Under the pieces are notes generated by a model. The model was not told the DNA's origin, did no database searches, and saw nothing but the letters and a program-made list of their open reading frames with translations. A program made the position numbers and the translations under genes. From contig JBLDXI010000046.1 in the NCBI GenBank assembly GCA_047495785.1, positions 124,001-188,000 of the forward strand: 64,000 bases of DNA. Reading direction: 5' to 3'. Below, one piece after another: positions 7,159-50,250 of the stretch (within the stretch, counting starts at the first letter, position 1; each line of letters opens with the position of its first letter). The DNA comes from Lepidodermella squamata (Eukaryota > Animalia > Gastrotricha).

Positions 7159-7247
7159 TCCAAAAATCTAATATAGCTTTCCCCTGTAATATAATTATCT
7201 GCTCAATGCTTTCTCCGATTTTTCAATTCGAGTAAAAATTAAGTAAT

Positions 7248-8329
7248 TTATTCGACGGACTTGATTATATGAGGAGTTTTTCGGTTCTGGTTCACATAAT
7301 TCCCGATTGACATGTATTTCAGCGAATCATGCCTTTTCCACCAGTTCTGGCCAAAATATTTCCTGAACCCCTTCTCGTGCAGTTTTTCAATCATAGTATT
7401 ACCATACTTCTCAAGCCGGTCCAAGTCATGGTTGAACGCTTCATCGCTTATCATATGCCATTCGACCAATAGATAACCGACGTAGTCGAGAGCTCCATCG
7501 CTTAACGCCCTAGTTAGCGACACCCATTCATCCCCTTCAACGTCCATCTTTACAACAGTTACATAGCTATGGTTGAGCATTTTCATGATTTCAGCCAGTG
7601 AATATGTATCCGGTTTACGATTTCCCTCCTCCTCGCCTGTAATGCCGTAGTGGTGGAATCGGACCCCGTTCGGCCGCACGGCTACGTCATTCATTGTCAT
7701 GTCAAAGGAATGGACGGTGCAACCGCGGAGAGCCATATCGTCGTCGAAGGCATAGTCATAATTCACCCTATAAAAAACTTGGGAATTACAACGAAAAATC
7801 GAGGAATTTAAAAAAAATACCCGAAGGAATAGACAATGCAAGGTTCGTCCTTAGGAAATTGGTCCATGCACACTTGATAAGTTTTGTGAGCTCTAGGCTC
7901 ATCAATTCCCATAGGTTGTAAAAACGAGCATGTGATATCTTCTTTCCTAGTAACTTTTCTGTAAATTTTAGACTATGAAAAATACAGTGGCTGTGATTGC
8001 TTCAAAATTTACCCAACTAGGCTGAAATATCGCTCAAGGTAGAGAGGCGAGTTTGAGAATGGATTAAACTTCCTTGACTCGTCACACGTATCAAAGCTGG
8101 AATATCAAGGAAAAATGAGGAAATTATATGAGTTATCGACATTTTTTGCTTACCATTTCGGATTTGGTGTTGTGGTTGGGGTTGGGGTCTCGATTGGCAC
8201 ATCCTGCTTAACTCTTTGATGGGGCTTGCCCTTGATGATCAGAATGAGAGATATGACTAATATGAAGACAGATCCAACCGCCACTCCCACTGTTTTCGGG
8301 TATATTCTGAACTGGCCTACTATCAACAT
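7248..8329 (-). CDS. METTL24-like (Methyltransf_22/FkbM-related) type II membrane methyltransferase, copy 1, 4 exons
   Basis: N-terminal TM (VGVAVGSVFILVISLILII), stem PKCFDTCD, then VYSFG-VNYDYAFDDDM..GCTVHSFD and KMDVEGDEW; intron positions identical in all four copies. Confidence 0.8.
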
Positions 8330-8457
8330 TTCCGAGTCTTATTTCGCAAGTGTGAGCATGAAAAGACTGCCTTCCTACACCAATCCTCAAATTCATTAAT
8401 TTATAAGGGAATAGGATTAGTTCTGAGATTTATTTTTAAACTTCAAATGCATAGATA

Positions 8458-9659
8458 CTACATCACCAATTCAGGTTTAGGCATTGTTCTATTTAGATTA
8501 GTATAGCCTGCTATAGTCAGGTATAACAATTGATCGAGTCTTCGCCACCAGTTTTCGACGTAAAATTTACGAAATCCTCGCATTTTCAAATTATCGACCA
8601 GTGAATTGCCGTACTTCTCCAATCGCAGCAAATCATGATTGAACGGATTGTCACTAATCGCGTGCCATTCGATCAGCAAATAGCCAACGGTGTCTAAAAC
8701 TTTATCGTCTAAGGCCCGGGTTAACGATACCCATTCATCGCGTTCGATGTCCATTTTCAGGACAGTTATGTAGCTATGATTGAGCATTTTCATTATCTCA
8801 GCCAAGGTTTTCGTGTTAGGCTTCCGATTCGTCTCATCTTCGCCTGTGATTCCCAGGGGCAAGAAGTTCAAATTCGGCTTCAGGGAGGTATTGAATTCAT
8901 CCATCGACATGTCAAAAGAGAAAACCGTGCAATTACGTGCTGCCATTTCGTCGTCAAAAGAGAAGTCGTAATTAATTCTAAAACAAGCGGAAATTATTCA
9001 AATTAACTGTTAATCGCAAGAGTACCCGAATGAGTAAACAATGCAAGCCTCATCCTTGGGGAAATTGTCCACACAAATGTGATAGGTCCTGTGGCCGTGC
9101 AGTTCATTTTCCCCTCGAGGTTCCAGATTTGAGCAGTTCATTTCCGGCGATTCATTTACCACTCTAGTCAACACAGGTAAACATAGGTGAGTTTGATCAA
9201 GGATAAAAGATGAGTGGGGCCAGAATTGGGAGCAATGTGAATCCGATAACCGGTAACAAAACAAAACTTCTCTAAATTTGATTGCAAAGTAGTAAAATCC
9301 CCGCGCGCCGTTGGTTCAAGCGTCTGAATTTTTTAGCAGAACATACTTTACAAGTCGAAAGAAGCGTTCAAGATAAGCGGCCGAGACTGGGGTAGGATTG
9401 ACTCGTCTCGTGAAGTCACAGGTATCGAGGCTATTGAAAAACGGTTATCAGACACGGAGATAAAACAAATGAAAACTGTTACGAACCAATTCGGATCTCT
9501 TCGTGGCTGAAAATCGCTCGCAGTACTTAGTTCGTGTCTAGTTTTAGCAGCGACAATCACCAGCCACGTGATCAGTGTCAAAATCAAGGCAGCGATAACT
9601 AAGATCTTGCATTCACCGGTGTTTGTTTGCGTTGGCGTCAACAACGCATATTTTGTCAT
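8458..9659 (-). CDS. METTL24-like methyltransferase, copy 2, 4 exons
   Basis: TM ILVIAALILTLITWLVIVAA, PNCLDTCD, ICVD..CIVYSFG, NCTVFSFD, KMDIERDEW. Confidence 0.8.
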
Positions 9660-10113
9660 TCACAAAACTGCATTGAATGGCGGGTTTCTAAGCCGCGGCG
9701 TCGCCAAAAATACAAGCGGAGGTTTAAAAACGCGTGGCTGTTAATTCCTTTGTCTTTAATCTCAAACAAAGAAAATTACGCTATTCAATTAACGCCAGCT
9801 ATCATTAAGATGAAAGCTAGAGGCTAGAGCGTTATGCTTTCGTAATAACACATGCTACTTTCCGATGATGCGGCCGTGAGGTATATATGTAATGCCGCAC
9901 AGAATGTCCATTATTCTGGGTTACTGTCGCGATATTTCATGATAATTCGCTTTACGATTGCAGGAAACGGGAAAGACATGTTACCATAAGTCACGTGACC
10001 GCAAATCTCGCCGAGTGCCTTTTGAAACCGTCTGTTTGTTAGCCACCTTGAGTAAAATCCACCAAATTATCGGAAGCCTCACATTTTCACTCGGAACCGG
10101 CTCAGTGAACTTT

Positions 10114-11196
10114 TTATTGTTTCAGCCATTTTCTATTTCGATTAACGTAGCCTGCGATTGTCATATATTGCATCTGATCATGCCGCGCGTACCAGTTTTC
10201 GATGTAGTACTTCCGGTAACCTAACTTCCATAGGCCATCAACCAAACCATTGCCGTATCTCTCCAGCCTATCTGAATTATACTGAAACGGATCACGGCCG
10301 AATAAGTGCCATTCGATGGAGAGGAACCCAACATTTTGCATAACCCCGTCATCCATGGCCTTCCGTAACGAAACCCATTCGTCCTGTTCAACGTCGAGTT
10401 TTAGCACGGTTAAGTAGTTATGGTTTAGCATTTTCATGATTTCAGCTAGGGTTTTGGTGTTGTTTTTGCGATTTGGTTCGTCTTCGCCCGTAATTCCTAG
10501 CTGGAAGAACCGAACGCTGTTATTCCTTATCGGTTCAGAATTCATTGTCATATCGAACGAGAAAACTGAGCAACCACGAGAAGCCATGTCGTCATCGAAT
10601 GTGAAGTCGTAATTTATCCTAAAATTAACCGATTTCAACATTTAAAAGGTCTGGTATTTAATAGCCTACCCAAACGAGTAGACGATACAAGGCTCAGTCT
10701 CCGGGAAGAAATCCATGCAGATGTGATAAGTCTTGTGGCCATTAGTTTCATCCTTCCCAAAGGCTTTTGACATTGAGCAATTTATATCTGGCGGGTCATT
10801 TATCTTCCTGAGAAAGACTTTAGAACTTAGATTATCAGGGTAGGAAACAAGAAACGTACCTAACAAGGTGAAAGAATTTCTCTAGAAATACGAAGGATCC
10901 TGGTATAGGATTGATCCTTATCGATGAATCGCAGGAGTCAAAACTAGGATTAAATTATTTGAAACCTAATTTTACGTACCTAATTATACATACCATGCTG
11001 GGTTCCGTTTGGCTGGCGACATGACGTTTAGCATTTCTATTGGTATTCTGCAGCTTGGTCTAGGCCTCAGCATCATGATGGTAATGATAATTATTATAGA
11101 CAATACTACGATGCCTTTAAATTTCGATTCTAGTTGCTGATAATATGGGACCAGCCGTTGAATCGGGTATTTTACCAATTGTATGTAGTTTGTCAT
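10114..11196 (-). CDS. METTL24-like methyltransferase, copy 3, 4 exons (start could also be 11283)
   Basis: TM GIVVLSIIIIITIMML, PACFDSCD, CIVYSFG, GCSVFSFD, KLDVEQDEW. Confidence 0.8.
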
Positions 11197-11730
11197 CTTA
11201 AGCTTGATAAATAAGCACAGGCAGTTTATTATGAATAACGCAGTTTTTAAGAGCAAACATGTTTGTAATGAGTCGCTTGCCATAGTGGCATCTCAGCCAT
11301 ATGCAAAATATTTAGTACCGGCTGCTTGCGACTACTCAACCCGGTAGCGACGAACACAGGCAATAACTCTGATTAATCGAATTGACAATTGATGGGATTC
11401 ATGTCTTCTGATGAATCATCAATAATTTTTGAGGATTATTGATTTTTGAGGATTTTGATTGGATTTTTGGGGCCTCCCTGCCCTAAATTAGTGGGGCCCC
11501 TCATTGTGGTCGCTACCTTGTGAAAAGCTTTGAGGATCTGCTCCCAGATAAACCACACTTTGATACTTTGTGCGCTATTAGAACAGATTTTGCTCAAAAT
11601 TCTGAGATTCATTTTAACTGAAAGTTTTTGGTAAGTGGGTTCAATATAAGCGGTTTCGGGCACAGTTAAATTAGCAAAAATAGTATTGATTTATTGAATC
11701 GTTCTTCAACATTTCATAAAATTGCGTCGA

Positions 11731-13182
11731 TTAATCAGGGTCTGAGGATTGCCTTCTGCGTTTCCTCCTCAAGTAATTTTCGAATAGATCAAGCTTATTG
11801 TCGATCACATTGCTGAATGTTTCCCGAATTACAGATTTGTACTCCGCATTTGGAGCTGGAAACCTCGGCTTATCGCCTTCGAAAAGGCGAAAATGAGCAA
11901 TAACACCCTCCGTATACGGGTCAAGATGCCGGACCATTCCTCCCTCGATCAACTTATGAATAGAGGCGACAATCACGTTGTCAGATCTCAAAATCATTTT
12001 CTCTCGAGAATGAACCATTGCCACAACATCAACAGTGTAATGGTCTCGAATTGTATGCTTAACCGAGTATGGGCCGATTCTGGCGTCCGTTGAATTCGGA
12101 GTCGGCATGTGAGTCATTGTCCAGAACGCTATTCCTCCGATGAAAGGATCCGCCTTAATAGTAGACTCCAGTAAATCTATCAGGCTCACTCCATTGAAAA
12201 CTTGTAAGAATTCATCGGTATCCATCGAAGCAACCCAGGTTGATTTTTCCCTCAAGAAATAGAAGCATTCGGTCATTGCCGATGTTTGAAAGTGGTGTGG
12301 CGTGAATTGGAGATGAAAATCAAATGGGACTAATGAAAGGATTCCCATCTCGAGATAATACGTCAAATATTCGAAAAAAGCATAAAAATCTGGGTCGTTG
12401 ATGTAGATAACAAAATGTTCGATTCCCAGCATAAGATGGTACTCAATCCACTCCGGGACTCGGTCTAAATGATATTTGTTGAGAGAAGTGCAAGCGGAGA
12501 GTTTGACTTTTCGGTTGAGTCTCACAGGCTCAGGGCAAATCTTTGTATTAACAGCCATTGTCCGGGTTATCTTCCTTGTTCTCGCTACGCTGGATGGTCC
12601 AAAAAGCTTCAACACATTCGGCTTTGCTAGAATGTAAATTCTACTCTTAGAAGTGATCTTAAATGATTTAGTATCGACCGGGCAATGAAGAATCACATTG
12701 GTATGGGAGCTCTCGTATTCCGGTGTTGGTGATTTAGAAACGCAGTGAATGAAATGACCGCTATCGATAACAATGCTCCAATCGTACTTGTAAGCCCACA
12801 GTTCGTATCCAATGAGGTTGTAATGCGAAATTCCATCAACGAGCAGTGGCGTGAGCAAGAGTGTGATTTGCACATACTCTGGTGTCAAATAGGCACCAGT
12901 TAGTAACGGATACTTAAGGGAAGCGATTTCTCTCAGCGTTCGAACTGCATAAAATTCAGCCTGTTGAAGGCACGAACATTCAGCCCCGCGAGATAGATTA
13001 AGGCGGTCGTAATTTCGGCCCAAATATGCGCATTTCGATAAAACGGCGTCAGGAATTTCCAGCGTCGGCAAAGGCTCGCTGTAGTATAGGTGTGGGTTGT
13101 ATCGAACAAAATAAAGTATCACCAGTATCAATTGAGGGCATATTTTCGGTAGTAATCTCACATTTAGGATATTGCGCAACAT
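11731..13182 (-). CDS. Glycosyltransferase family 92 (DUF23, GALT-1-like), intronless, copy 1
   Basis: N-terminal signal anchor; EWIEYHLMLGIEHFVIY, Q-x5-C and WVASMDTDEF (DxD) are GT92 hallmarks. Confidence 0.8.
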   Translation of the reverse strand: MLRNILNVRLLPKICPQLILVILYFVRYNPHLYYSEPLPTLEIPDAVLSKCAYLGRNYDRLNLSRGAECSCLQQAEFYAVRTLREIASLKYPLLTGAYLTPEYVQITLLLTPLLVDGISHYNLIGYELWAYKYDWSIVIDSGHFIHCVSKSPTPEYESSHTNVILHCPVDTKSFKITSKSRIYILAKPNVLKLFGPSSVARTRKITRTMAVNTKICPEPVRLNRKVKLSACTSLNKYHLDRVPEWIEYHLMLGIEHFVIYINDPDFYAFFEYLTYYLEMGILSLVPFDFHLQFTPHHFQTSAMTECFYFLREKSTWVASMDTDEFLQVFNGVSLIDLLESTIKADPFIGGIAFWTMTHMPTPNSTDARIGPYSVKHTIRDHYTVDVVAMVHSREKMILRSDNVIVASIHKLIEGGMVRHLDPYTEGVIAHFRLFEGDKPRFPAPNAEYKSVIRETFSNVIDNKLDLFENYLRRKRRRQSSDPD

Positions 13183-13875
13183 TATGCCTAGAAACAGGCA
13201 TTGTTTATGAGTTCTTTTTTAGTCTGAATTCGTGGCTTGGCTCGTATCATTTGTAAAAGCAGGATTGGTGGGTTACATGCGATGACCTTTGGCCGGAAAA
13301 AGTTTCAATGCGCGAGATATAATAATCGTTGTCTGGCGAAAAAGTTTGAAGTCAATTTCATAGACCGCGCGTGCTGATAAACTTTAACCTACCTGAAAGG
13401 CCTTACTTTAAGGATGCTCGAAAAAAATGTGATTAGGAACATCAAAATATCGATGATCAACCTATGAAGTCGGATCAGTGTGCGAAGTAGGATGCTCGAG
13501 TTGAGGGTACTTTCAACCAGTTTTTGGCCCGAAATTTCAGACCAAAGGGTCCCCCCTGTGGTTTTTTTCGGTTTTTCTTGCCAAGATAATTTGATCAATT
13601 GGTATATTTGATCTAACGAGAACGAAAATGCAAGGAAATAAGCACAAGACCATGTCCCATGACGGGATGAAAAGTACCGAAAATCATGAAATAATCCGAA
13701 TAGGATCTTTTGCGATGCTTATTTTCGGCAAATTTTCTGGAAAAATGTTCGAGAAGGTTTTGTCTTTATTGCATCGGTGCCTTTCCCTTTAAATGAGCTC
13801 TAAAAATCGATAATTTGTCTTTTATCACAAGTTTCATCACAAGTCTATGGATTTTTATTTGTCGTTCAAAATAAG

Positions 13876-14963
13876 TCAGTCATCGTTTCTGTTACTCTTG
13901 ATTCGATTCTGATTGACGTAGCCAGCAATAGTCAAATATTGCAGCTGGTCGTGCCTTCTGTACCAGTTCTCGCCATAGTACTTCCGAAATCCCTTATCGT
14001 GCAACTTCGTGATCAATCCATGCCCATATTTCTCCACCCTGTCGAGAATACCTTTGAACGGATAATTGCTCACAACGTGCCATTCCATAACTAGATGGCT
14101 GACCCGTTCCATGACGCCATCATCAAACGCCCTAGTCAAAGATACCCATTCATCTCTCTCAATGTCGACTTTGAGTACGGTGATGTAGGTATGGTTGAAC
14201 TTTCGCATGATTTCAGCCAACGTTTTTGTGTTCTCCTTACGATTCCCCGAAATTTCACCAGTTAAACCGATTTCATAGAATTTAACGCCACTCGGACGAA
14301 CAGGCTCATCGTGAATGCTCATGTCAAAGGTGAAAACCGAACATCCACGCGCTGCCATTTCGTCGTCAAACGAATATTCCCAATGAGATCTAGTGGAAAC
14401 ATAGATAGATCAATATTTCGGCGAGAAGAAATTAATACCCGAATGAATAGACAATGCATGGTTCATGTTCTGGGAAATTGTCCATACAAACTCGGTAGGT
14501 TTTGTGAGCATTCTCTTCATCTTGCCCAAATGGCTGTAGCTTGCTACATTTGACCTCCTCCGGAGCTCCTACTCTTCTAAAACCAAGGGTTTATTTACTC
14601 AAAGGCGATGTTTTCAACAAAAACTCACTTTACTAGGGCGAAAAAGCGCTCGAGGTAGAAAGTTGCATCTGAATGTGGATTAACATTCGTATGAAAGTCG
14701 CATGTGTCGTAACTAAAGAGAAATCGAAATGGTTCGCGAATATTGCGAGGTCAAAGTCTTTACCAATTAGGAGATCTAGTTGGCGCGGGCGTTTGTTGCG
14801 TTTCGATCGCTTTCTCCGGTTCACATTTCGGGCAACTCGAGCTTAAAATGAAGATTTGAGTGATGAAAATGAGGAAGAGAAGGCCACATATCACAATAGT
14901 ATTTATGTGGCTTAACCGTGTCAATGACACAAAAACGGAAGGAACTAAAATGCTACCTGACAT
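13876..14963 (-). CDS. METTL24-like methyltransferase, copy 4, 4 exons
   Basis: TM IVICGLLFLIFITQIFIL, PNCYDTCD, VYSFG, GCSVFTFD, KVDIERDEW. Confidence 0.8.
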
Positions 14964-15374: not shown

Positions 15375-16465
15375 ATGAAAAAGCAATGGGGCATAGTTTC
15401 ATCCTGGATTTTCACAGGTAAAGACTGTTCACTGACCATTAATTACGAAATAAAGAAAAAATTGTTTTCCAGGTCTAGCAGCTTATTTGCTTTCCCAAAA
15501 TGCAACGGAGAAATTGCTCAAGCCAGGTTTGTAACATTTAATCACCCTGAATCTGTTAAATTCAGCCAAATGTAAATTTAGAAACCGTGGAAGATCCGTT
15601 GAATTTGCCATTTATCATAACTGTAATCTCATCGAGATGCCAATTCGAAAAGCGCCAAGCGATTCGAGAAACATGGGGCGATCGCAGAATGTTAGCTAGA
15701 ATGCTTGGAAATCAAACATACGGGCCTTACTTCATCATCGGACAGCCGGATATTAAGAAATTCAATGATTCAATAGTTGACGAATGTCAAACAAGAATAG
15801 AGAAAGAAGTGACTATCTACGGCGATTTGGTGACTATTTCTGCCCTAGATGTTTACAGCCTGCTAACCCCGAAAGTGTTCGAAACTTTCCTTTGGGCTCG
15901 GCATAAGCTCAGTTTAACCCATTCATCTGGGGATAAACATAGTACTTTCTACTTGGTCAAGACTGATGACGATGCTTACATCAATTTGTTGGCTATAGCT
16001 CGGCAATTCTATCATTCGATGAAGGAACATAGCAAGCGATCCATTTTAGACAAAAACCTCTACTGCGTTGCAAATACTGGAGCTATAGTTGTTCGAGCCA
16101 AAGACTCAAAGTATTATACATCTCGGGAAAGCTACGCCCCCGATTGGTATCCACCGTTTTGCTCCGGGATCGGTTACATTTTCCAAGTTGGCTTGCTAGA
16201 TTTGATGATACCGAAAATCAGGGCGAGAATGGCGAATTATGTACAGAATGAAGATGCGTTCTTCACTGGCATAATAGCTGAGGAGCTGAAGTTGAGGCAC
16301 TTGGATTTCGAGTTCACAGATTCTTGCGGACCGCATGGCTCCGGATGGACGCAGGAGTCGCTTTGCCCAAACGCGAGTCGAAACGCGGTCGTTCACCGTT
16401 TGGAGCCACGCGATATGCGGATGTTGCATAAGTGCCCGGATATGCAACGCTTCTATCGTTATTGA
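15375..16465 (+). CDS. GT31 (Galactosyl_T, beta-1,3-glycosyltransferase) copy 1, 3 exons
   Basis: Two short phase-1 introns give MKKQWGIVSSWIFTGLAAYLL...; RQAIRETWG, KTDDDAY, YPPFCSGIGY, EDAFFTG. Confidence 0.85.
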
Positions 16466-17702: not shown

Positions 17703-18747
17703 ATGGATGTATTATTGTTATTTATATGGCGATTTCTTTTCTTTTTCCTAAATGCCGGTGAGCTATATATTTCTTTCATTTTTTTTATTTATTTTAAAAA
17801 CACTGAAAACAGCTATTTTCAACTATCTGCTGCTGGAGTATTCGCCATTTGGAGCACTTCAAAAAAGTTAGTCCTCGAAATTCCAAGGGTTATCAATTTG
17901 TTTAAGAAATGTTAAAGTTTCTCTAGTCTGGACTAATGGCGACGTTAATGTACCCCTCATCATCACCGTAATTTCTTCACGAAGCAATTTCGAAAAGAGG
18001 CAAGCTGTGAGGGACACATGGGGCAACCGAACTTATCTCACATCGAACCTCGGCTCTCGAATTCTCGGACCGTTTTTCGTGGTTGGAAAATCGGAGAAAG
18101 ATGACGGTTGCCAAGATCGACTGGACGCTGAAATCGCGGCTCATGGCGATCTAATAGTCGTACCTGCTTTGGATACCTATCGCATGCTTACCCCCAAGGT
18201 ATTAGAAGCCTTCCGCTGGGTACTGAGCTTAGCGAATGCGCGAAAGTACTACCTGGTTAAGACGGATGATGATGCTTATGTCAATTTAGTCGCGATAGCT
18301 CGAACTTACCATCGAGTGATGAAGATTAGAAACCGAAGGCTGGACAAATCATTCTACTGCTACGTAGTTACCGGGGCGCCTGTCATTCGAGCTAAAGATT
18401 CGATTTACTACGTCACACCGGAAAGCTTTATTCCTGATCGGTATCCAGACTTCTGCTCCGGTATTGGGTACATCTTTCAAGTTGGTCTTCTAGACCTAAT
18501 GATGCCGGGAATCATGGCTAGAATGGAGCATTTTGTACCAAATGAAGACGCGTTCTATACCGGGATAGTTGTGCAAGGCCTGAAGGTAAGGCATTATTCG
18601 GTGAAAAATGCCGTCGTCCTTGGTACATCATGGACGGATGAAGGACTATGTGGCGATGCAGCTAGAATGGATCTTGTTCATCGGCTGCAGGCACATGAAA
18701 TGCGCCGATTACATGCGTGCTCACTAGCTATTAGAGCTAAATCTTGA
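17703..18747 (+). CDS. GT31 beta-1,3-glycosyltransferase copy 2, 3 exons
   Basis: MDVLLLFIWRFLFFFLNA signal anchor, same two phase-1 introns; KTDDDAY, FCSGIGY, EDAFYTG. Confidence 0.85.
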
Positions 18748-19310: not shown

Positions 19311-20389
19311 ATGCTCGCCCTACCAAACTCAACAGGATGGCGTTACTTCTTATTTTTCGCAGGTATGTCACCAGGCAAATTTCTCAATTTTTTCCAGCTT
19401 CATCTAGACTAAATCTATACAGTTTCCTTAGTAAACGTGAAAGTGCCAAAAATCGCCATTATTCGAGTTTTGGATTCAGGTAATACTGAAATACTCAACT
19501 CAATTTTCGCTGAATTACATAATTTTCAGCAATCGGTGTTCGCTACGATGATGATAATATTGGGGAGATGAAATTTATTATCACTGTCATTTCGAGGCTA
19601 TGCAACTTTGACAAGCGACAAGCTATCAGAGAAACATGGGGGAACCAAACAATGCTGAGATCGAAACTTGGCCCTCATATCTTTGGACCTTTCTTCATCA
19701 TTGGAACTTTTGATTCTAATCAAAGTAACGTGTCTAGTAACCGGGACTGCATGGGTCGATTGAATACTGAAATCGAAACACATCAGGACGTTTTTCAAGT
19801 ATCAGCCTTCGAGAAATATCGCCAACTTACGCTGAAAGTTTTCGAATCTTTCAAATGGGTGCGGCACAACCTTAATTTGACGAATCTCGAAAACTTCTAC
19901 CTAGTGAAAACGGACGATGATATTTATGTTGATTTGGTCGCTGTTTCCCGAGCTCACCATCGATCTATGATGCCTCGTAGCGATAAGGTGGATAGATCCT
20001 TCTACTGCTTCGTCCATTCTGGGGCTCCGGTTATTCGCGATCCTACGTCAAAACACTACGTCTCAAGGGAGAATTATGCCCCTGACTGGTATCCGAAATT
20101 TTGCTCAGGAATCTGTTACATCTTCCAAGTCAGGCTTCTCGATCTCATGATACCAGAAATTAATAGGAATATGAACAATTCAGACCCGAATGAAGACGCT
20201 TTCTTTACAGGAATCATCGCGGAGCGCCTCAAGTTGCGACACAGATCGATAAAAAGCGCAGTTCCCTTTGCTTTCCCGACTGAAGAAGATAAAGTATGTC
20301 AAAAGGGCAGGAACAAATTGCTGGCTCACCCCTTGGGACCCCGTGAAATGCTAACACTTCATAAATGTCGCGAAAATAAAACTTTTTAA
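19311..20389 (+). CDS. GT31 beta-1,3-glycosyltransferase copy 3, 3 exons
   Basis: MLALPNSTGWRYFLFFA-VSLVNVKVPK...-AIGVRYDDDNIGEMKF via two phase-1 introns; KTDDDIY, FCSGICY, EDAFFTG. Confidence 0.8.
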
Positions 20390-20391
20390 TT

Positions 20392-21693
20392 TTATTCTGA
20401 AATTAAAGTGACAGGAGTAGATTTCATTTTGAAGTTGTTTAGTCTCTGGCTTAGAATCGGGTCGAATCTCATCGCAAACGTCTCGTCCTTCTCAGCGATA
20501 GGGGTTAATCCTCCGATCGTTAGCCTATCGAAGAAAATCGTCCTGATTTGATTGTAAGGATCCGCATGATTTTCCCCAAGTTTCAGCTCAGTTTGCGTTA
20601 CGTAAGATACATTAGGAGTTCGAACTATTACGTCGCTGATTTGATAGTCAAACGTTGGATGCTTGTTCCTCCAAGTCCAGTTTAAAACTCGGCTGTAACC
20701 GAGAGTCTTCACTAAATCAGGCCTTGCCGTAGTGTTTAAGCTGGAAAATCGCCATGGGTGCACCATTAAGCCACCGATCAGAGGTTGTGTGACCACCTTT
20801 CGAATTGCCTCCACCATATGTTTCCCGTATGGATCCATGAACCGGTCTGTTGAATGGAATGAAACGTAAACAGCTCGCGGTTTGAATCGGTATAAACAAT
20901 CGTTCATCGCACTGCTATCTAGGAAGTATTGATCAACCGCTCGAAAATTCCACGGAATCAAAGTCACAATTTTCTCATCCAAATATGGCTTTAAAAAGGA
21001 CGAAAGCTCTTTAAAGTCTTCATGAGAGACGTAGATAATGAAATGTTCGAAATCCGTCAATCTGTGATATTCAATCCACTCAGGTATTGTAATAAATTTC
21101 CGCCTATCAGTTACGTAGGAGCAACTCGTTAATGAGAAATTACGAGGCGCGGAATTGAGCTCATTTGAATTAAGGCAGACATTTTCGTAAGTTTGTATAA
21201 TCGAATGTTTCGAAATAGCCCGGATGTCTATTTTTTGCCCGGGGTATAAAACGCGGTTTAAATTCTCCGAGATGTCGAATTTCAGTATCAGGGTGTCTAA
21301 ATGGGTATTTGGCAACTTGCCAACCGCCTTGAAATCGAACCGAATTCCATCAACCGAGCCTCGCCATTTCGAATCCGCCCACCACTTTCGGTAATTCCAG
21401 TAGGTGTATTGCCAGTTTGAAAGTTTCTTCGAAGCGAAAATTGCGTATAAAACAGGATGGCCTTTCCTTGTCGAACGGAATACGCTAAGAAGATACGGCG
21501 CGTTGTTATCTCCATTAGGAGGCGGAAGATCGGCAATTGAGTTCCTGCTACAGCTTGTCATGCCAGTTTTTGATTGATTTCGAAATTCCTTCCTCTCCAG
21601 CCATCGTATTATCGGGGCCCATGTTAGATTAGCAGATATCAGTAACAGCACGCCTGCTACAATTCTAGCACTTAGAATTCGTTTTTGATTCAT
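20392..21693 (-). CDS. GT92-like protein, intronless, divergent DxD (copy 2)
   Basis: Signal anchor; IPEWIEYHRLTDFEHFIIY, VTLIPW, MNDCLYR; the DxD position reads HSTDRF. Confidence 0.75.
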   Translation of the reverse strand: MNQKRILSARIVAGVLLLISANLTWAPIIRWLERKEFRNQSKTGMTSCSRNSIADLPPPNGDNNAPYLLSVFRSTRKGHPVLYAIFASKKLSNWQYTYWNYRKWWADSKWRGSVDGIRFDFKAVGKLPNTHLDTLILKFDISENLNRVLYPGQKIDIRAISKHSIIQTYENVCLNSNELNSAPRNFSLTSCSYVTDRRKFITIPEWIEYHRLTDFEHFIIYVSHEDFKELSSFLKPYLDEKIVTLIPWNFRAVDQYFLDSSAMNDCLYRFKPRAVYVSFHSTDRFMDPYGKHMVEAIRKVVTQPLIGGLMVHPWRFSSLNTTARPDLVKTLGYSRVLNWTWRNKHPTFDYQISDVIVRTPNVSYVTQTELKLGENHADPYNQIRTIFFDRLTIGGLTPIAEKDETFAMRFDPILSQRLNNFKMKSTPVTLISE

Positions 21694-21827
21694 TTTACCT
21701 TCAAAAGCCTAAGTTGATTCCTGCTTCAAGTTACCAAGCCTCCAATTAAAGATTTCTGATTTTGAGAGATGAAGCCAATCCCACAAGGTATGTAGTCTTG
21801 AAATGAGATGTAAAAGTGTCGCTGGAA

Positions 21828-23949
21828 ATGAATTTACGTTTTACGCGGTCATTGATTACCCCGGCAATATACTGTTGCGTCACGTTACGCGGCCTTTTCG
21901 TAGCATTTAGCCCTAAAATCGAGCCAGTGATTCGAGAAATTCCTCTGCCTCCGATAAATTTTGAAAATTTAACAGCTGAATGCAGTTCTTTTTCGTCGAA
22001 ATTTACGTCTTGTACCAAGAAACCACAATGTCTCTACGGCCGAGACGCGTTAAGTCAATTTCCCTTTACAAATGCACCAAAATTTGACCCGAAAAAAGCT
22101 GCAGAGGCGGACGATCAAGAAGCGATAACAGAGCATATTCGATCGATATATTTTTCAAGGATTAGGCAAAAATTATCCTCGCTATCTTGCGGTAATTCGG
22201 CGTGTAGGCCGAAATTTCTGGTCTATACATGTACTGGTGGATGTTGCGGCTGGGGAGATCGGCTACGAGGGATAACAACCATGTTTTACGCCGCGCTTCT
22301 CACAGATTCAATTCTGCTAATCGACGCCAGGTATCCGTTGCCGCTTGATCAATTTTTCGTTATAAATACCGAACTTTACGGAGTTCATAACGATGTTTTG
22401 ATGGCGAAGCAGGAAGAGAACTGTTTGCTGGATCAACCCGACGCATTTCATTACGAGGTGAAGATGAACTCTGACGACAATTTTCGCGGTACAGTCGTCA
22501 GATTTTACCGGGATTATCTGCCTGATACGACTAAGGTTGGCGTCAAAGTTCAGACTAACACAATGGTTGGCGTAGGAGAGCTGTTGGCCCGTCGAGATCT
22601 GTTTGGAGAGCTAGGGAAGATTTATGGATTGCATGAGTACACCAATATACAGCTGGTTTCTGCCGCTGCTCGGATTTTAGTTGGAAAACCACAGCCAAGG
22701 CTGGAAGCTTTCGCTCAACAGGCGTGGCAGCGAATTTTCAATCAGCCGTATAACAAGTCAACCCCAAAAATTGGTAAGGCTAAGGGTTCATTTCTGAATA
22801 AAAAATGGTCACTTAGGACACTTGAGAACATCTATTTGAAAAATCAATTTGTTAATTCGCTATTTCTCCATTCCCACTCCAATAATTCTCGTTTTCTTGT
22901 CTGGAAATCGAATTTTAAAATCTAGAATTTAATTACGAAAGAAATTCCAGTTTGGAAAAATACTAATTGTGAAATCTTCTTAGCGAAAATCAACACCTAG
23001 CCATTTTATTCGGTTATTTAACTTGATATGGTTAGGGTTAGGTTTAGGGGTTACGGTGACAAAACAGCAACTGCGCAGAACAACAAACGCGACAAAACAG
23101 CAACTTTTTCAACTTGCGACAAAACAGCGAAAACTTAGTATGTAAAAGATGCATCGTGTTTCTGCTGTTATGTCGCAAGATGAAAATGTTGCTGTTTTGT
23201 CGCGTTTGCTGTTTTGGCTATTTGCTGTTATGACGGTCTGCGTTATGAGGTTATGAGGTTACGGCGACAAAACAGCAACTGCGCAGAACAGCAAGTTAGG
23301 GTTAGGGTTAGGTTAGGGTGAGTGGCTGGCTCTTAAAACGGGAGATTAGGAACTGGATGGAATAATTTTGGTACTGAATTCAATAGTTTTGTAATGATAT
23401 CACCATATCCTATGATCTCACTATAGGTATGTAAAATTATTCTACCTCAAAATTTTTAAAATCTTCCAAGGTATCCATTTACGAATCGACACATCTTACA
23501 GAGTATGGACAAGCCAACTTCACTGCATAATACCAGAACTTCGCCACATGATTACGAAATACAATTTGCGGAAGCCATTGATCTACATTGCAAATGACAA
23601 CCCTGAAGCCATAAGCAAGCTAATTAAAGCCCTGTGGGTGAACCATCGGATAAAGGCCTACCAACCTATCGACGACGTTCGTCACATCGACGGCATTATG
23701 ACTGATGAGGAGCCGTGGCGAAGCTGGAATACGACGAAGCGTTGGGAAATTGTTGCGGCGACTTATCGCGACTGGTTGTTCCTATCGCGAATGGACTATC
23801 TTATTGTGAGTAGGAGCGGATTTTCAGAATCAGCTGCTTACATGTCTCGCATCCCTACGCGCCGCTTTTTGTACAAGCACCGCGACGAATGCTTATTCGA
23901 TGACTTCAACTCAATTCCAAATTGGGAATTCCCCATCTCAGAAACCTAG
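21828..23949 (+). CDS. Alpha-2/alpha-6 superfamily fucosyltransferase-like protein (GT23/GT37/NodZ-type motifs); exons about 21828-22773 and 23471-23949, 5-prime end uncertain
   Basis: GWGDRLRG; splicing rebuilds motif I IGIHLR; motif II IYIANDN; motif III DWLFLSRMDYLIVSRSGFS. Confidence 0.75.
23030..23319. repeat. Palindromic MITE-like repeat built from GCGACAAAACAGCAA subunits, bracketed by GGTTAG(G) telomere-like hexamers
   Basis: Subunits run forward over about 23055-23135 and inverted over about 23160-23235. A 38-bp direct repeat at 23049 and 23257. A second partial copy lies at about 42325-43062. Confidence 0.7.
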
Positions 23950-24661: not shown

Positions 24662-26044
24662 ATGTTTACAAAAAGGCATTGCTCATTGGCGATAAGCTCT
24701 GCTTTCGTAGCTATCATGGCATTTTGCATGAAATATCCATACCTTGAAAAGCCAATTTGGACACGACGAGTGGAACCGAAATTAGTGAGTGCCTTCGCAA
24801 AATGCGACTCGCTTCACCAGAAATGGGAGATGAGCAATTTAGCGAGGAGCGCGTCATGCTTCTGCCGGCAACGAGCTCACCTTTACGCCAGCAATTCGCT
24901 AATGAAATTGGCAATGAAGGCTCAACCTTTGATTACGTCCATGCTCCATCAAACCGATATTCACGGCAATCACGCTATTTATATCACTTTGTTGCCTAGT
25001 CGGATAACAATCGATGGGACTGATTACGATACAGCTGATCACTACTTGAAATTAGCTTACCGAACGAAATGGCAGGTGACAGCGAGAAGGGCTGAACAAA
25101 TTGACTGCGAGGCAGTTTCTTCGACGCCTGAAACTAACACGAATTACGGGCCCATTATACTCAAATGTCCGATTCTAGGACAACATGTAACAGCAGTAGG
25201 AGACATCAGCATTTACAAGTCTGGCTCAACTTTTCTTTACAGCGGAGTTTTGTGTGAGCAGCCTCTTACTCTGCAGAAACCGACGTTGAATCTAGTGATG
25301 TGCACTATGGTGAATGGGTATCATAAATCGCGAATTCCGGAATGGATCGAGTATCACTTATTAATAGGATTCGAACATTTTACTATCTACGTCAATGACG
25401 CGAATGCTTTGGAATTTTACGAATTTTTGAAGTATTACCTCGTTAAAGGCGTGGTCACTTTGGTGCCCTACGATTTCCACCTTAATTTTACCGAATTTCA
25501 CTTTCAACACGCCCAGATTAACGAATGCTTTCATTTGTGGAAGGGTCGGGCGAAATGGGTTGGTTCGATTGACGTGGACGAGTTTTTCGAGGTCTTCGAC
25601 GGGAATTTCCTCGATACGGTGGAATCTATTTATTCCGAAAATCCTTTAGTTGGTGGAGTTGGATTTAACACCCAATTTCACGGAAGGACGACGAATGCTT
25701 CCGAGTCTTATATTGGAAATCACATGATATCTCACGTGGTTCGCGACTATACATTTTTACTATCCTTTGCCGAGTACTACACGAGGCAAAAGGTGTTGCT
25801 GAGGGCTGATAATGTCGTCTACAGCCTTGTGCATCAAGTACTTGAGGGTGGCGCGGTGAAATACTTGGACTCTTTTACAGAGGGCAGAATTGCGCATTTC
25901 AAAGACTTCTACGACAGGCCTCTCAACCCGCCAGACCACCGTAATCCAAACGTTCCAACGGTTCGCAAGCGCTATGGCGATGTTATCGAACAGAATCTTC
26001 AAAAATTTCTGCACTTTTTGGATCAACAGCTGAGAGCAGCGTAG
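24662..26044 (+). CDS. GT92 glycosyltransferase copy 3, intronless
   Basis: Signal anchor; EWIEYHLLIGFEHFTIY, QHAQINEC, WVGSIDVDEF. Confidence 0.85.
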   Translation: MFTKRHCSLAISSAFVAIMAFCMKYPYLEKPIWTRRVEPKLVSAFAKCDSLHQKWEMSNLARSASCFCRQRAHLYASNSLMKLAMKAQPLITSMLHQTDIHGNHAIYITLLPSRITIDGTDYDTADHYLKLAYRTKWQVTARRAEQIDCEAVSSTPETNTNYGPIILKCPILGQHVTAVGDISIYKSGSTFLYSGVLCEQPLTLQKPTLNLVMCTMVNGYHKSRIPEWIEYHLLIGFEHFTIYVNDANALEFYEFLKYYLVKGVVTLVPYDFHLNFTEFHFQHAQINECFHLWKGRAKWVGSIDVDEFFEVFDGNFLDTVESIYSENPLVGGVGFNTQFHGRTTNASESYIGNHMISHVVRDYTFLLSFAEYYTRQKVLLRADNVVYSLVHQVLEGGAVKYLDSFTEGRIAHFKDFYDRPLNPPDHRNPNVPTVRKRYGDVIEQNLQKFLHFLDQQLRAA

Positions 26045-26580: not shown

Positions 26581-27966
26581 ATGTTCTCAAAAAATCATTT
26601 CGCATTGGCGACAAGCTCTATTTGGGCTATAATCATCATATTTTGCACGAAATATCCGTACCTTGAAAAGCCAATTTGGACGCGACGGTTAGAGCCGAAA
26701 TTAGTTAGCGCCCTTGCAAAATGCGACTTGCTTCGCCAGAAATGGGACATGAACAACTTGACAAAGAGCGCGTCATGTTTCTGCCGACAACGGGCTCAAC
26801 TTTACGCCAGCAATTCGCTAATGAAATTAGCAATGAAGGCTCAACCTTTGATTACGACAATGCTCTATCAAACCGATATTCACGGCAATCACGCTATTTA
26901 TATCACTCTGCTACCCAGTCGAATAACGATTAACGGAACCCATTACGATGCAGCTGATCATTATATCAATTTGGCCTACCTAACGAAATGGCAGGTTACA
27001 ACCAGAAGCGCGGAAAAAATTCGCTGCGAGGCTGTTTCTTCGACGCCTGAAACCAATACGAATTACGGGCCTATAATACTAAAATGCCCGATTTCAGGAC
27101 AAGCTGCTGTAACAACACCACAAGATATTAGAATTTACAAGTCTGACTCTACATTCCTTTACAGTGGAGTTTTGTGTGAACAACCTTTGGTTGTGAAAAA
27201 ACCGACTATGAATCTTACGATGTGTACTATGGTTAATTGGTACCACAAATCCCGAATTCCAGAATGGTTGGAATATCACATGTTGATTGGATTTGAACAT
27301 TTCGCGATCTACGTGAACGATGTAGATTATCTGGATTTTTTCGAGTTTTTGAAATATTACCATGTAAGAGGCGTGGTTACTTTGGTGCCCTATGATTTCC
27401 ACCTTAATTTTACCGAATTTCACTTTCAACACGCCCAGATTAACGAATGTCTTCATTTGTGGAAGGGTCGAGCGAAATGGGTTGGCTCGATAGATTCCGA
27501 TGAGTTTTTCGAGGTTTTCGACGGGAATTTCTTGGACAAAATGGAGTCGGTATACGCCGAAAACCCTTTAATAGGTGCAGTAGGATTTTGGACGCAATTT
27601 CACGCGAGGACTACAAACGCCACGGAGGATCACATCGGGAAACACGTGATTTCTCATGTTGTTCGTGACTATACTTTTTTACAATCCTTCGCAGAGTACT
27701 ACACGCGGCAAAAGGGGCTGCTTAGGCTCGAAAATGTAGTCTACAATCAAATACATCAAACGCTCGAGGGTGGTGTGGTGAAATACTTGGATTCCTTCAC
27801 CGAGGGTCGAATTGCGCATTTCAAAGATTTCTACGATAGGCCTCTCAACCCGCCAGACCACCGTAATCCAAACATTCCAACGGTTCGCATGCGCTTTGGC
27901 GATGTTATCGAACAGAATCTTCAAAAATTTCTGCACTTTTTGGATCAACAGCTAAGAGCAGCGTAG
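26581..27966 (+). CDS. GT92 glycosyltransferase copy 4, tandem duplicate of copy 3
   Basis: Colinear and highly similar to 24662-26044; WVGSIDSDEF; upstream blocks ACAAGGCAATCCT and GCGTCTAGACAA are also duplicated. Confidence 0.85.
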   Translation: MFSKNHFALATSSIWAIIIIFCTKYPYLEKPIWTRRLEPKLVSALAKCDLLRQKWDMNNLTKSASCFCRQRAQLYASNSLMKLAMKAQPLITTMLYQTDIHGNHAIYITLLPSRITINGTHYDAADHYINLAYLTKWQVTTRSAEKIRCEAVSSTPETNTNYGPIILKCPISGQAAVTTPQDIRIYKSDSTFLYSGVLCEQPLVVKKPTMNLTMCTMVNWYHKSRIPEWLEYHMLIGFEHFAIYVNDVDYLDFFEFLKYYHVRGVVTLVPYDFHLNFTEFHFQHAQINECLHLWKGRAKWVGSIDSDEFFEVFDGNFLDKMESVYAENPLIGAVGFWTQFHARTTNATEDHIGKHVISHVVRDYTFLQSFAEYYTRQKGLLRLENVVYNQIHQTLEGGVVKYLDSFTEGRIAHFKDFYDRPLNPPDHRNPNIPTVRMRFGDVIEQNLQKFLHFLDQQLRAA

Positions 27967-28255: not shown

Positions 28256-29584
28256 ATGTCACTATCATGCTTGTCCATACTGCTGTCAATTATTTTCGTC
28301 CCATTTTTTATGATTAATTACGCAATTTTCTCAAATCGAAAATACGTAATGCCCAGGATGACCAAACACCTGGATCGCGTTCATTACATGCAAGCATTCA
28401 GAAATGGAGCTATGGACTGTAAAACAATGGAAATTATTCGAATATCCCACAAATATGATTACGACGATGACAAGTATCGCGAAATTCGCGACTCGATTAA
28501 ACCTGGATTCGATAAATCTTTGATTTGCGATAATTGCTTCAAACTCCCCGACGTAGACAAATACGGCTGGCCTCAACGGTGCGATGAAAGCGTCGAAATT
28601 TTCGTAGCTATCAAGTCTCCACCTCAAAATTTCAAGCAGCGATATGCGATCAGAAATTCTTGGTTGTTAAACCATTTGATAACCAGTCCGAAAAACCGAA
28701 TTCGCCACGCATTTTTCGTAGGCCTGCCGCCAGAAATTCGCGGGGAAAAGTCGAATTTTGCGCGACTTATTCGGCTGAAGCAATTTTGTGAATTATACAA
28801 CAGTTGCCGCTACAACGAGCCGGAATTTGCGGGGAAGACCAACATCAGCTCTGTCCATATGAAAAATTACTACGCCGCTGAGAGAAGTCGCGAAAATTAC
28901 GACAAATTCATCAAATCAACAGCTTATTACCGAAATTTGCCGTCGAAAAAGCTGTTTGATCTAATGTTGGGAGAAGCCGTCTCGAAAAACGACATGGTTT
29001 TGAATGAAAATTATGATGATTTTCCTGGGGATGCTCTGAATAAAAGTCTGTCATCTATGCTTTGGTCGCGGAAATTCTGCGGAAATTCGAGATTTGTTGT
29101 TCTCATGGATGACAATGTATTTCTGTTCCCCGATCGTTTGCGGTTGCTGTTGGATCGATTTTCAAATGAAAAGTTATTCATGGCTGGGAATAGAGTCAGC
29201 GGTGTCATTGACCATTTTTCCAAGCCATTTTACGTTATGGGGTCGGATGCTGTTGATTCATTACTTAGCGTCATTCCCAACCTTAATTTCGAGCTTTTAT
29301 CGAAGAATTCGACTGAAAATGTGATAATCACAGGATTTGCAAGGTCATTAGCTGGAATAGAAGATCGACACATTTGCCATTTTTCTGTTGGATCTCATGC
29401 ATGGCGGACAGTTCAGTACCATGAAATCGAGCCATGGGTTGTAGCAACATTGTCAAATCCAAAAAATTCGCTGTTCATCTCTCGGTCTATTTACAACCCG
29501 CATAGCCCGAAAAATGACCGGAGGAATCTGGAGCGAGCCCTTGCGACTAACTTGAGCCTTCCATTTTACCCTGAAATTCCTTAA
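28256..29584 (+). CDS. Divergent GT31-like protein, intronless (copy 4)
   Basis: Signal anchor; VAIKSPPQNFKQRYAIRNSW, FFVG, WSRKFC; KxDDD replaced by LMDDN and ED by EN; long insertion after FFVG. Confidence 0.75.
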   Translation: MSLSCLSILLSIIFVPFFMINYAIFSNRKYVMPRMTKHLDRVHYMQAFRNGAMDCKTMEIIRISHKYDYDDDKYREIRDSIKPGFDKSLICDNCFKLPDVDKYGWPQRCDESVEIFVAIKSPPQNFKQRYAIRNSWLLNHLITSPKNRIRHAFFVGLPPEIRGEKSNFARLIRLKQFCELYNSCRYNEPEFAGKTNISSVHMKNYYAAERSRENYDKFIKSTAYYRNLPSKKLFDLMLGEAVSKNDMVLNENYDDFPGDALNKSLSSMLWSRKFCGNSRFVVLMDDNVFLFPDRLRLLLDRFSNEKLFMAGNRVSGVIDHFSKPFYVMGSDAVDSLLSVIPNLNFELLSKNSTENVIITGFARSLAGIEDRHICHFSVGSHAWRTVQYHEIEPWVVATLSNPKNSLFISRSIYNPHSPKNDRRNLERALATNLSLPFYPEIP

Positions 29585-50104: not shown

Positions 50105-50250
50105 CATTTTTTAAGCGCGCATTTTTCGCGATTTTCACCCGTAAACTTTGAAGCCCATTTTCTCAACGACCCTGGTGACTATCAACTATCAACCTATGTT
50201 TGATATCGTTCGATTCCTCGTTAAGTGATCTTGAAAGCGGCATCAAAATC
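50105..50250. repeat. Second copy of the dispersed repeat at 33882-34020
   Basis: Direct sequence match with scattered substitutions and a short CTATCAA duplication. Confidence 0.75.

Follow-up and report, generated by a model that had tools for sequence, protein, structure and literature searches.

A tandem set of METTL24-like genes in a glycosyltransferase-rich locus of the gastrotrich Lepidodermella squamata: putative glycan O-methyltransferases

Gene content of the locus

The window, which is the whole 64,000-nucleotide stretch of Lepidodermella squamata DNA analyzed here, contains four METTL24-like methyltransferase genes, A to D, all on the minus strand and each with four exons separated by GT..AG introns. 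Gene A (7248..8329, 305 aa) consists of exons 8329-8154, 8096-8013, 7958-7821, and 7767-7248, and gene B (8458..9659, 304 aa) of exons 9659-9487, 9430-9347, 9163-9026, and 8977-8458. Gene C (10114..11196, 309 aa) has exons 11196-10994, 10943-10860, 10807-10670, and 10618-10114, and gene D (13876..14963, 311 aa) has exons 14963-14764, 14712-14629, 14576-14439, and 14389-13876. The lengths of exon 2 (84 nt) and exon 3 (138 nt) are identical across the set, and the models bear out the original prediction of four genes with a common four-exon structure between 7248 and 14963. An earlier 338-aa frame for gene C, starting at the ATG at 11283, was ruled out by a 1-nt indel near 11272 between two genomic copies of the locus. 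Because this indel falls inside the N-terminal extension, the coding start is Met30 of that frame, at 11196. The four proteins are 47-52% identical in pairwise comparisons. They are old tandem duplicates, forming a fast-evolving, lineage-specific subfamily.

Glycosyltransferase genes are interleaved with and adjacent to this set. A GT92 gene (11731..13182, minus strand; a single 483-aa frame; PF01697, E = 7.8e-20) lies between C and D, and a GT31 gene (Galactosyl_T, PF01762) at 15587..16465 on the plus strand (E = 2.7e-23) is divergent from gene D. Two additional plus-strand GT31 genes follow at 18007-18747 (PF01762, E = 1.8e-32) and 19568-20389 (PF01762, E = 2.3e-26). Beyond them are GT92 genes at 20392..21693 (minus strand; PF01697, E = 8.9e-15), 24662-26044 (plus strand; PF01697, E = 1.7e-23), and 26581-27966 (plus strand; PF01697, E = 5.1e-21), and a GT31-like gene at 28256..29584 (plus strand; PF01762, E = 1.3e-09). 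Within 25 kb there are four GT92, four GT31, and two C-type lectin genes, so that the glycosyltransferase neighbors that had been predicted are, by Pfam, more numerous than claimed. All GT92 members characterized so far are beta-1,4-galactosyltransferases, and GT31 enzymes are beta-1,3-transferases. The same region holds an ORF at 21816-22925 (369 aa) that has no homolog by word search and a sub-threshold match to GT37.

Second genomic copy, selection, and transcription

The locus occurs twice in the genome, a different contig bearing a second copy with about 92% identity. In both copies the genes are intact and their splice sites are conserved; dN/dS against the copy on contig C29 is 0.16 for A, 0.11 for B, 0.10 for C, and 0.07 for D. 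All copies of A to D are under purifying selection. Elsewhere in the genome there are two canonical METTL24-like genes (FDPSM), on contigs C25 and C28. One dispersed copy has lost an invariant Glu and carries a frame change.

Genes A and B are transcribed and spliced, as indicated by the exact predicted joints in RNA-like contigs. All three intron joints of gene B occur in the X1 contigs with CT..AC ends, and the intron 3 joint of gene A occurs in RNA-like contigs; the joints of both genes are absent from the DNA run. RNA-like coverage of gene C is thin and confined to exon 4, and RNA-like contigs also align on the GT92 gene between C and D. This comparison spanned 6000 bases, and gene D lies outside that span.

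Relationship to the METTL24 and FkbM families

Based on profile evidence, A to D belong to the METTL24/Methyltransf_22 family (PF13383, FkbM-like), and they make up a new subfamily within this known orphan family. Exon 4 alone scores 17.8-21.9 bits with PF13383, slightly below the gathering cut-off of 22.4 bits. Extending the scored region to exons 3 and 4, with the intron included, raises the values to 30.4 bits for gene C and 28.9 bits for gene B, both above the cut-off; this read-through scoring covered B and C only, to which A and D have the 47-52% identity given above. A profile search with exon 4 identified 1713 relatives, and PF13383 was present in all ten of the best matches scanned (E = 1e-14 to 8e-53), the named ones being called METTL24-like. 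With a wider profile, the best 120 matches all possess PF13383 and many are named METTL24. Among the named matches, large sets of mollusc paralogs dominate. Searching proteins by word index with this exon of gene A gave no match, since family members have diverged too far to share 5-mers, and an exhaustive profile search was required.

The FkbM profile (PF05050) scores 16.6-21.3 bits on exon 4 of A to D, the highest value being that of gene A, and all are below its gathering cut-off of 22.7 bits. It matches all ten of the scanned homologs, five of them above the cut-off. Judged by these scores, A to D are related to the FkbM family but are not classed in it. The METTL24 membership and FkbM relationship that had been proposed are supported by the profile scores, the nearest relatives, and the structural match of a homolog, and the description of METTL24 as an orphan holds within the literature searched.

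Like other METTL24 family members, A to D possess three N-terminal cysteines, the motifs (L/I/V)VYSFG, FD, K-x-D-x-E-x-x-E-W, and E-x-H, and an N-terminal hydrophobic segment combined with a single catalytic domain roughly 200 residues long. In contrast to them, they group apart in a long-branched clade of their own, the stem branch of the subfamily measuring 1.89 changes per site, and are only about 25-37% identical, over single exons, to the homolog P0009. Moreover, the stem motif C-x-D-(T/S)-C-D..NP..LE(R/K)xF is absent from the eight homologs inspected, and A to D carry FDM where the family carries FDP.

The predicted model of P0009, the closest homolog with the same architecture, has a pLDDT of 90 and displays the class I SAM-methyltransferase fold, standing in for the proteins of the window. 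When it was compared with solved structures by VIA-align, the first match was the FkbM-family structure 2py6 (Z = 10.2, 195 residues), a top rank tied with many other structures. The sugar O-methyltransferases EvdMO1 and SpnK gave Z of 8.3 and 7.9, respectively. Because rRNA and small-molecule methyltransferases had similar values, the structure gives no substrate. Foldseek against the PDB found only generic class I methyltransferases (TM about 0.3), and sequence searches of solved structures found nothing but a chance match to prion protein.

Genomic context and proposed function

As a putative and testable hypothesis, to which we assign a probability of about 0.4, A to D may methylate the hydroxyls of glycans. 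Each is predicted to be a single-pass, type II-like membrane protein, and in the most likely mechanism its class I SAM-dependent methyltransferase domain would face the lumen of the Golgi or ER. An MFS_5 (SAMT-1/GoSAMT-type) transporter would bring SAM into the lumen, and the methyl group would be transferred to sugar hydroxyls on glycans built by the neighboring GT92 and GT31 enzymes, the four paralogs differing in acceptor or position. The genome encodes MFS_5 (PF05631) homologs at C20:1298916 (259 bits) and at two sites on contig C1 (162 bits). The MFS_5 family has been proposed as the Golgi SAM transporter (bioRxiv 10.1101/2021.07.06.451061); since the family is widespread, its presence is permissive rather than discriminating.

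The genomic context is central to this proposal. GT92 loci are a small fraction of the 121-Mb assembly, so under a uniform model the methyltransferase genes would be unlikely to fall within such a locus by chance and to have a GT92 gene among them. The original prediction that context would give this family a function stands in part: GT92 and GT31 neighbors are present here, but the association does not recur at eight homolog loci in other species. None of these eight has a GT92 or GT31 neighbor, three of them being metagenome contigs with uninformative gene calls only, and at the Capitella locus the neighbor is a UDPGT/sulfotransferase-type conjugating enzyme. Within the same genome, the canonical METTL24-like gene on contig C25 and a fifth copy, on contig C29, have no glycosyltransferase neighbor among the large open frames scanned. 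Among the loci examined, methyltransferases and glycosyltransferases are associated only at this locus and its second copy. Because A to D are tandem duplicates and the second copy is not independent, the context represents a single independent observation.

In another reading, A to D are luminal or secreted methyltransferases of secreted-protein side chains, lipids, small metabolites, or xenobiotics, and their proximity to glycosyltransferases reflects a neighborhood of secretory genes prone to duplication. The orphan status of METTL24 in the literature searched and the macrolide hydroxyl methylated by FkbM itself, in the 31-O-methylation of FK506, are consistent with such substrates, as are the small-molecule and RNA methyltransferases that match the P0009 model with Z equal to those of the sugar enzymes. 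So are the Capitella neighbor and the other homolog loci described above. C-type lectin arrays occur in the region as well, and several other glycosyltransferase clusters of the genome are without methyltransferase genes; the methyltransferase profile matched nothing in the other GT92 clusters, on contigs C32 and C38. In addition, vertebrates, which retain METTL24, are not known to produce O-methylated glycans, and this counts against a glycan substrate. Against a non-glycan substrate are the improbability of chance placement, the anchor-plus-stem layout typical of Golgi glycan-modifying enzymes, and the expansion of the family in molluscs, a phylum rich in O-methylated glycans, which fits glycan methylation. 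We consider a non-glycan substrate to be about as probable as a glycan one.

Worms and molluscs are known to O-methylate their glycans (PMC12507850), and in the literature searched, reviews still list the animal glycan methyltransferases as unidentified (PMC6422873, 2019; PMC7614267, 2023). It would be a larger step to conclude that A to D and, by extension, METTL24/Methyltransf_22 are the missing animal Golgi glycan O-methyltransferases, with each paralog specific for its own sugar or position within the Gal-rich glycans of the adjacent GT92 and GT31 enzymes, and we regard this extension as rather unlikely. If it were true, it would account for the many methylated sugars of molluscs through the large expansions of the family in that phylum.

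Protein architecture and membrane topology

Methylation of glycans in the secretory pathway would place the catalytic domain in the lumen. A single hydrophobic segment lies near the N-terminus of each of the four proteins (19-residue Kyte-Doolittle mean of 2.3-3.0), at about residues 13-32 in gene A. The segment is followed in all four by the stem motif P-x-C-x-D-(T/S)-C-D ... NP ... LE(R/K)xF, by six cysteines conserved throughout A to D, and by VYSFG, FD, and K-x-D-x-E. The N-terminal transmembrane segment, stem, and catalytic core that had been claimed are all found in these sequences, and the short N-terminal tail, single anchor of about 20 residues, stem, and C-terminal domain support a type II-like architecture. 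A type II anchor followed by a stem is the hallmark layout of Golgi glycan-modifying enzymes. An N-terminal hydrophobic segment is also present in 43 of 48 homologs, and four of the six cysteines reach at least 90% conservation across the family. A single N-glycosylation sequon recurs, but in only 15 of 52 family members, which weighs against the proposal. A luminal catalytic domain is predicted from the anchor, the stem, and the shared cysteines.

Alternatively, the catalytic domain could be cytosolic (type I-like or tail-out), or a cleaved signal could release a secreted protein that acts extracellularly. The rule of flanking charges does not clearly give an N-in orientation for B and C, where the charge balance between the two sides of the anchor is close to zero or tips slightly to C-positive, and human METTL24 carries a signal-peptide annotation and is listed as secreted. 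Nevertheless, six cysteines common to A to D, four of them family-wide, would be unfavorable in a reducing cytosol. Likewise, the sequence after the hydrophobic stretches (about 16-22 residues) is charged or Pro-rich and lacks a small-x-small cleavage motif, so that these stretches resemble anchors rather than cleaved signals. Both a cytosolic domain and a secreted protein are thus improbable.

Catalytic residues

Across 52 aligned sequences, the motifs YSFG, FD, K-x-D-x-E..E, and E-x-H hardly vary, and A to D keep all of them. Gly occupies the position after D(I/V)E in A, but B and D have Arg there and C has Gln. The original prediction had correctly noted Arg or Gln in three copies, but the Gly that it took to be usual occurs in only 17 of the 52 sequences. 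Because this position varies across the family, the change from Gly to Arg or Gln was rejected as a functional signal. From the retention of the invariant residues, A to D are likely to be active. That they are instead inactive pseudo-enzymes, for instance glycan- or SAM-binding scaffolds for the neighboring transferases, is very improbable: Met does replace the Pro that follows the motif-II Asp in 48 of 48 homologs (FDP) in all four genes, and the subfamily stem branch is very long, but every family-invariant residue is kept in both genomic copies with dN/dS of at most 0.16, and the dispersed copy that lacks the invariant Glu is also frame-changed, as expected if this Glu matters.

Significance and comparison with known systems

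Innate-immune lectins, ranging from fungal tectonin to those of animals, target the O-methylated sugars on worm and mollusc glycans, and such sugars are also antigens of parasitic helminths. The locus offers a concrete and cheap set of candidates, namely four expressed or conserved METTL24-like enzymes of Golgi-type architecture among genes of galactosyltransferase families. If a glycan activity were true, it would provide a function for the orphan METTL24 family, which is conserved in animals, and genetic control of glycan methylation, and a negative outcome would still narrow the search for the animal glycan methyltransferases.

The bacterial enzymes of the FkbM family resemble A to D in their related profile and in the best structural match to the P0009 model, 2py6, which is also of this family. 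Unlike A to D, they are soluble and cytosolic, and they possess neither an anchor nor the conserved cysteines. NoeI, probably an FkbM-family member, would be a precedent for sugar O-methylation if this assignment is correct. Two papers name noeI as responsible for 2-O-methylation of Nod-factor fucose (PMC6275314, PMC8678110). RIPS-1 was dropped as an FkbM-like animal precedent, the term not being used in the papers found.

The plant DUF579 enzymes (GXM, AGM) are a precedent for the methylation of sugar hydroxyls in the Golgi. These polysaccharide O-methyltransferases of the Golgi have the type II layout. They belong to an unrelated sequence family, and the resemblance is limited to the proposed mechanism and location. 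Methylation of the glucuronic acid of xylan is reported to depend on GoSAMT (bioRxiv 10.1101/2021.07.06.451061).

In Caenorhabditis elegans, the glycosylation gene clusters C13A2, K06H6, and T15D6 contain "potential methyltransferases" (PMC7614267). These are candidates by gene context and may be unrelated to the METTL24 family. As in the gastrotrich, the genome is a compact animal genome in which glycosyltransferase families are mixed with putative methyltransferases of type II layout, and GT92 and GT31 are large families there also. The samt-1 pathway of C. elegans provides a further parallel, because methylation there needs a transporter of the MFS_5 family, proposed to carry SAM into the Golgi, and homologs of this transporter are present in the L. 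squamata genome.

Gene Models and Family Assignment

The window is compact eukaryotic DNA; its GC content is about 0.42 and its introns measure 48-183 nt. On the minus strand, 7248-14963 holds four METTL24-like genes, A (7248-8329), B (8458-9659), C (10114-11196) and D (13876-14963), which share one four-exon plan with canonical GT..AG introns, an exon 2 of 84 nt and an exon 3 of 138 nt. Spliced models were built locally and are the basis of translation, alignment, dN/dS and the tree; database searches were run with single exons. The proteins are 304-311 aa long, with pairwise identities of 47-52%. All four have a single hydrophobic stretch of ~16-22 residues near the N-terminus (Kyte-Doolittle 19-mer mean 2.3-3.0) and a stem that contains P-x-C-x-D-(T/S)-C-D, NP and LE(R/K)xF. 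They also share C-I-V-Y-S-F-G, S-F-D-M, K-x-D-(V/I)-E-x-D-E-W and E-W-H. The gene models and translations confirm the N-terminal TM, stem motif, four-exon structure and motif core of the original prediction. Its view of Gly as the usual residue after D(I/V)E did not hold. Gly is found there in just 17 of 52 aligned family members, so the Arg or Gln at this position is uninformative on function. A start of gene C at 11283 was ruled out by a 1-nt indel (~11272) between the two genomic copies of the locus, within the proposed extension. The gene starts at the ATG at 11196, which gives it a single anchor like the other three.

Exon 4 alone falls just short of the Pfam thresholds of both Methyltransf_22 (PF13383) and FkbM (PF05050). 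When exons 3 and 4 are read through the intron, PF13383 passes its cut-off of 22.4 bits in C (30.4 bits) and B (28.9 bits). A word-index protein search for relatives gave no match, and an exhaustive search, run with a profile of the exon-4 sequences of all four genes, recovered 1713 proteins at E<1e-3, just one of them below 1e-30. All 10 top hits scanned were strongly PF13383, and those with names were mollusc 'methyltransferase-like protein 24'. With a profile of 56 rows, a second search brought up many mollusc matches, including Haliotis, Pomacea, Biomphalaria, Mytilus and Pinctada, and also matched a nemertean, Capitella and Macrostomum. Pomacea carries tandem gene arrays of the METTL24/Methyltransf_22 family (locus L031). 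Many spiralian relatives have two or three tandem Methyltransf_22 domains per protein, among them the Solemya velum homologue P0001 (842 aa) and numerous matches 480-610 aa long. In the literature searched, METTL24 occurs only as an expression marker, without a substrate, in keeping with its description as an orphan, and no link between METTL24 and glycans was found.

No solved structure for any relative was found by sequence search. The closest homologue of the same architecture, P0009 (305 aa), was folded with the family alignment (mean pLDDT 90), yielding a model with a long helix at the N-terminus, a pair of short ones and a Rossmann-type domain at residues 95-300. Foldseek with this model returned generic class I methyltransferases only. 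A wider structural search ranked the FkbM-family 2py6 first (Z 10.2, 195 residues), with many rRNA and small-molecule methyltransferases less than 1 Z unit behind and the sugar O-methyltransferases EvdMO1 (Z 8.3) and SpnK (Z 7.9) in the same crowd. The P0009 model confirms a SAM methyltransferase fold near FkbM, and its structural matches point to no substrate. The PF13383 scores, profile hits and FkbM-family top match support the METTL24 membership and FkbM relation originally claimed.

Residues conserved at 90% or more in the family alignment comprise three N-terminal Cys, YS(F)G, a fourth Cys, FD, K-x-D-x-E-x-x-E and E-x-H, and A-D retain all of them. Their sole systematic departure is the replacement of the Pro of FDP by Met. 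At S-F-D-M (7701-7712 in gene A), Met is present in A-D and in a dispersed fifth copy, and Pro in 48 of 48 aligned homologues. This Met, right after the presumed SAM-ribose-binding Asp, is a subfamily signature. In a quick maximum-likelihood tree A-D form one clade (SH-aLRT 99) with a long stem branch (1.89 changes per site). The genome also contains two canonical FDPSM family members, on contigs C25 and C28. A-D are a new and divergent subfamily within a known orphan family.

The fifth copy lies on contig C29 (L009, C29:3055132-3058551), where the match at C29:3056632-3057131 is nearest to gene C. It keeps FDM, but because the invariant Glu of K-x-D-x-E is changed to Val and the frame shifts near the 3' end, it is probably a pseudogene. 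It sits ~6 kb downstream of an ATP-sulfurylase/PAPS-synthase-type gene (L016:1154-2696).

Glycosyltransferase Context

Glycan O-methylation, at a probability of roughly 0.4, is the best single explanation of A-D, not far ahead of action on another kind of substrate. The glycosyltransferase neighbours on which the proposal drew are present and are more than were originally noted. Specifically, there are four GT92 genes (11731-13182, between C and D; 20392-21693; 24662-26044; 26581-27966) and four GT31 genes (15587-16465, 18007-18747, 19568-20389, 28256-29584). Additionally, a plus-strand 369-aa open frame (21816-22925) matches the GT37 xyloglucan fucosyltransferase profile at a sub-threshold 15.6 bits over residues 111-171; it had no homologue in a word search and no other Pfam signal, and may be a divergent fucosyltransferase-like gene.

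Directly past the last GT31 gene are two plus-strand C-type lectin domain genes (29919-30395, 31558-32100), placing glycan-binding and glycan-making gene families side by side. Next on the minus strand are exons (32969-34643; Neur_chan_LBD, Neur_chan_memb) that belong to a Cys-loop ligand-gated ion channel gene, and with them the glycan-related cluster ends.

Genome-wide, at least 49 GT92 and at least 31 GT31 matches were found, counting both genomic copies. Because most GT92 matches sit in a few large clusters, a uniform model makes it unlikely that A-D came to lie inside one of these by chance. A-D are a single tandem family and therefore represent one independent association only. That A-D are luminal or secreted methyltransferases with a non-glycan substrate is a serious contender, of about the same probability as glycan O-methylation. 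The methyltransferase profile had no match in the large GT92 clusters on contigs C32 and C38, the large open frames scanned around the C25 and C29 paralogues included no glycosyltransferase, and a GT92 or GT31 neighbour was seen at none of eight homologue loci in other species, three of which are uninformative metagenome contigs. In Capitella teleta (KB302988.1; L030, 2796-5329), a gene matching both UDPGT and Sulfotransfer_1 lies 5 kb from a METTL24-like gene; this neighbour is a conjugating enzyme, not a glycan-building one.

Topology

The catalytic domain of A-D is quite probably luminal, since the proteins have one anchor at the N-terminus with a stem after it, the Cys are conserved, and 43 of 48 homologues possess an N-terminal hydrophobic segment. 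The stem is Pro/Thr-rich or charged, and exactly six Cys past the anchor are conserved in all four proteins, four of them family-wide. Two points lower the certainty: the charges on either side of the anchor favour N-in in A and D but are neutral or slightly reversed in C and B, and a recurrent NH(S/T) sequon occurs in just 15 of 52 family members. Cytosolic or secreted variants are less likely and, set against the anchor and Cys pattern, seem improbable.

Second Genomic Copy, Selection and Expression

The window belongs to contig C46 of a 121 Mb assembly. Window positions 1-52783 are collinear with C29:3311775-3360000 at ~92% DNA identity (range about 89-96%), and 50047-52783 is 100% identical to the C29 copy. 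The C29 copy could be either a homeologue or a divergent haplotype in which one tract has lost heterozygosity or undergone gene conversion. All of A-D are intact there, with exon lengths and splice sites unchanged. Between the two copies, dS is 0.11-0.21 and dN/dS (Nei-Gojobori) is 0.16 for A, 0.11 for B, 0.10 for C and 0.07 for D, indicating that the genes are under clear purifying selection. Beside such ratios, a reading of A-D as pseudo-enzymes is less likely still and can be given very little weight.

Contigs of two public runs, one RNA-like and one DNA, were placed on 7200-13199, a region that takes in genes A-C. The RNA-like run joins gene A exactly at 7767/7821 (intron 3) and gene B at 8977/9026 (intron 3), 9163/9347 (intron 2) and 9430/9487 (intron 1), all with CT..AC ends on the plus strand. 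None of these A and B joints occurs in the DNA run over the same region, which means that both genes are transcribed and that their splicing follows the models. RNA-like cover is only thin on gene C and on the GT92 gene at 11731-13182.

Proposed Mechanism and Comparison With Known Systems

If glycans are the substrate, A-D would act as SAM-dependent O-methyltransferases anchored in the Golgi membrane. The invariant His and acidic cluster (K-x-D-x-E-x-x-E, E-x-H) would be the obvious residues to serve as a general base and perhaps to bind a metal. Since every characterised GT92 enzyme is a beta-1,4-galactosyltransferase and the GT31 family consists of beta-1,3-transferases, galactose-containing glycans would be the likely acceptors. 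The maintenance of four old paralogues under selection suggests that A-D differ in acceptor or position. SAM would be delivered by a transporter of the MFS_5 family. SAMT-1 of C. elegans and the GoSAMTs of plants belong to this family, and both have been proposed to import SAM into the Golgi (bioRxiv 10.1101/2021.07.06.451061). The L. squamata genome contains three MFS_5 homologues, of which one is strong.

Reviews and glycomic papers say of the nematode enzymes that methylate glycans that they 'remain to be identified', and describe clusters of putative Golgi glycosylation genes in C. elegans that include 'potential methyltransferases' (PMC6422873, PMC7614267). Because these clusters have been described, the idea of clustered glycan methyltransferases is already known; its assignment to the METTL24 family appears to be new. 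A 2025 review of microalgal N-glycans makes no mention of any methyltransferase. The present finding turns the open question of animal glycan methyltransferases into a short list of expressible candidates.

Sugar O-methylation has two precedents. The first is NoeI, a putative FkbM family member. NoeI is named as the gene for the 2-O-methylfucose of Nod factors (PMC6275314, PMC8678110). The second is formed by the DUF579 Golgi methyltransferases of plants (PMC6508755), which are unrelated to A-D in sequence.
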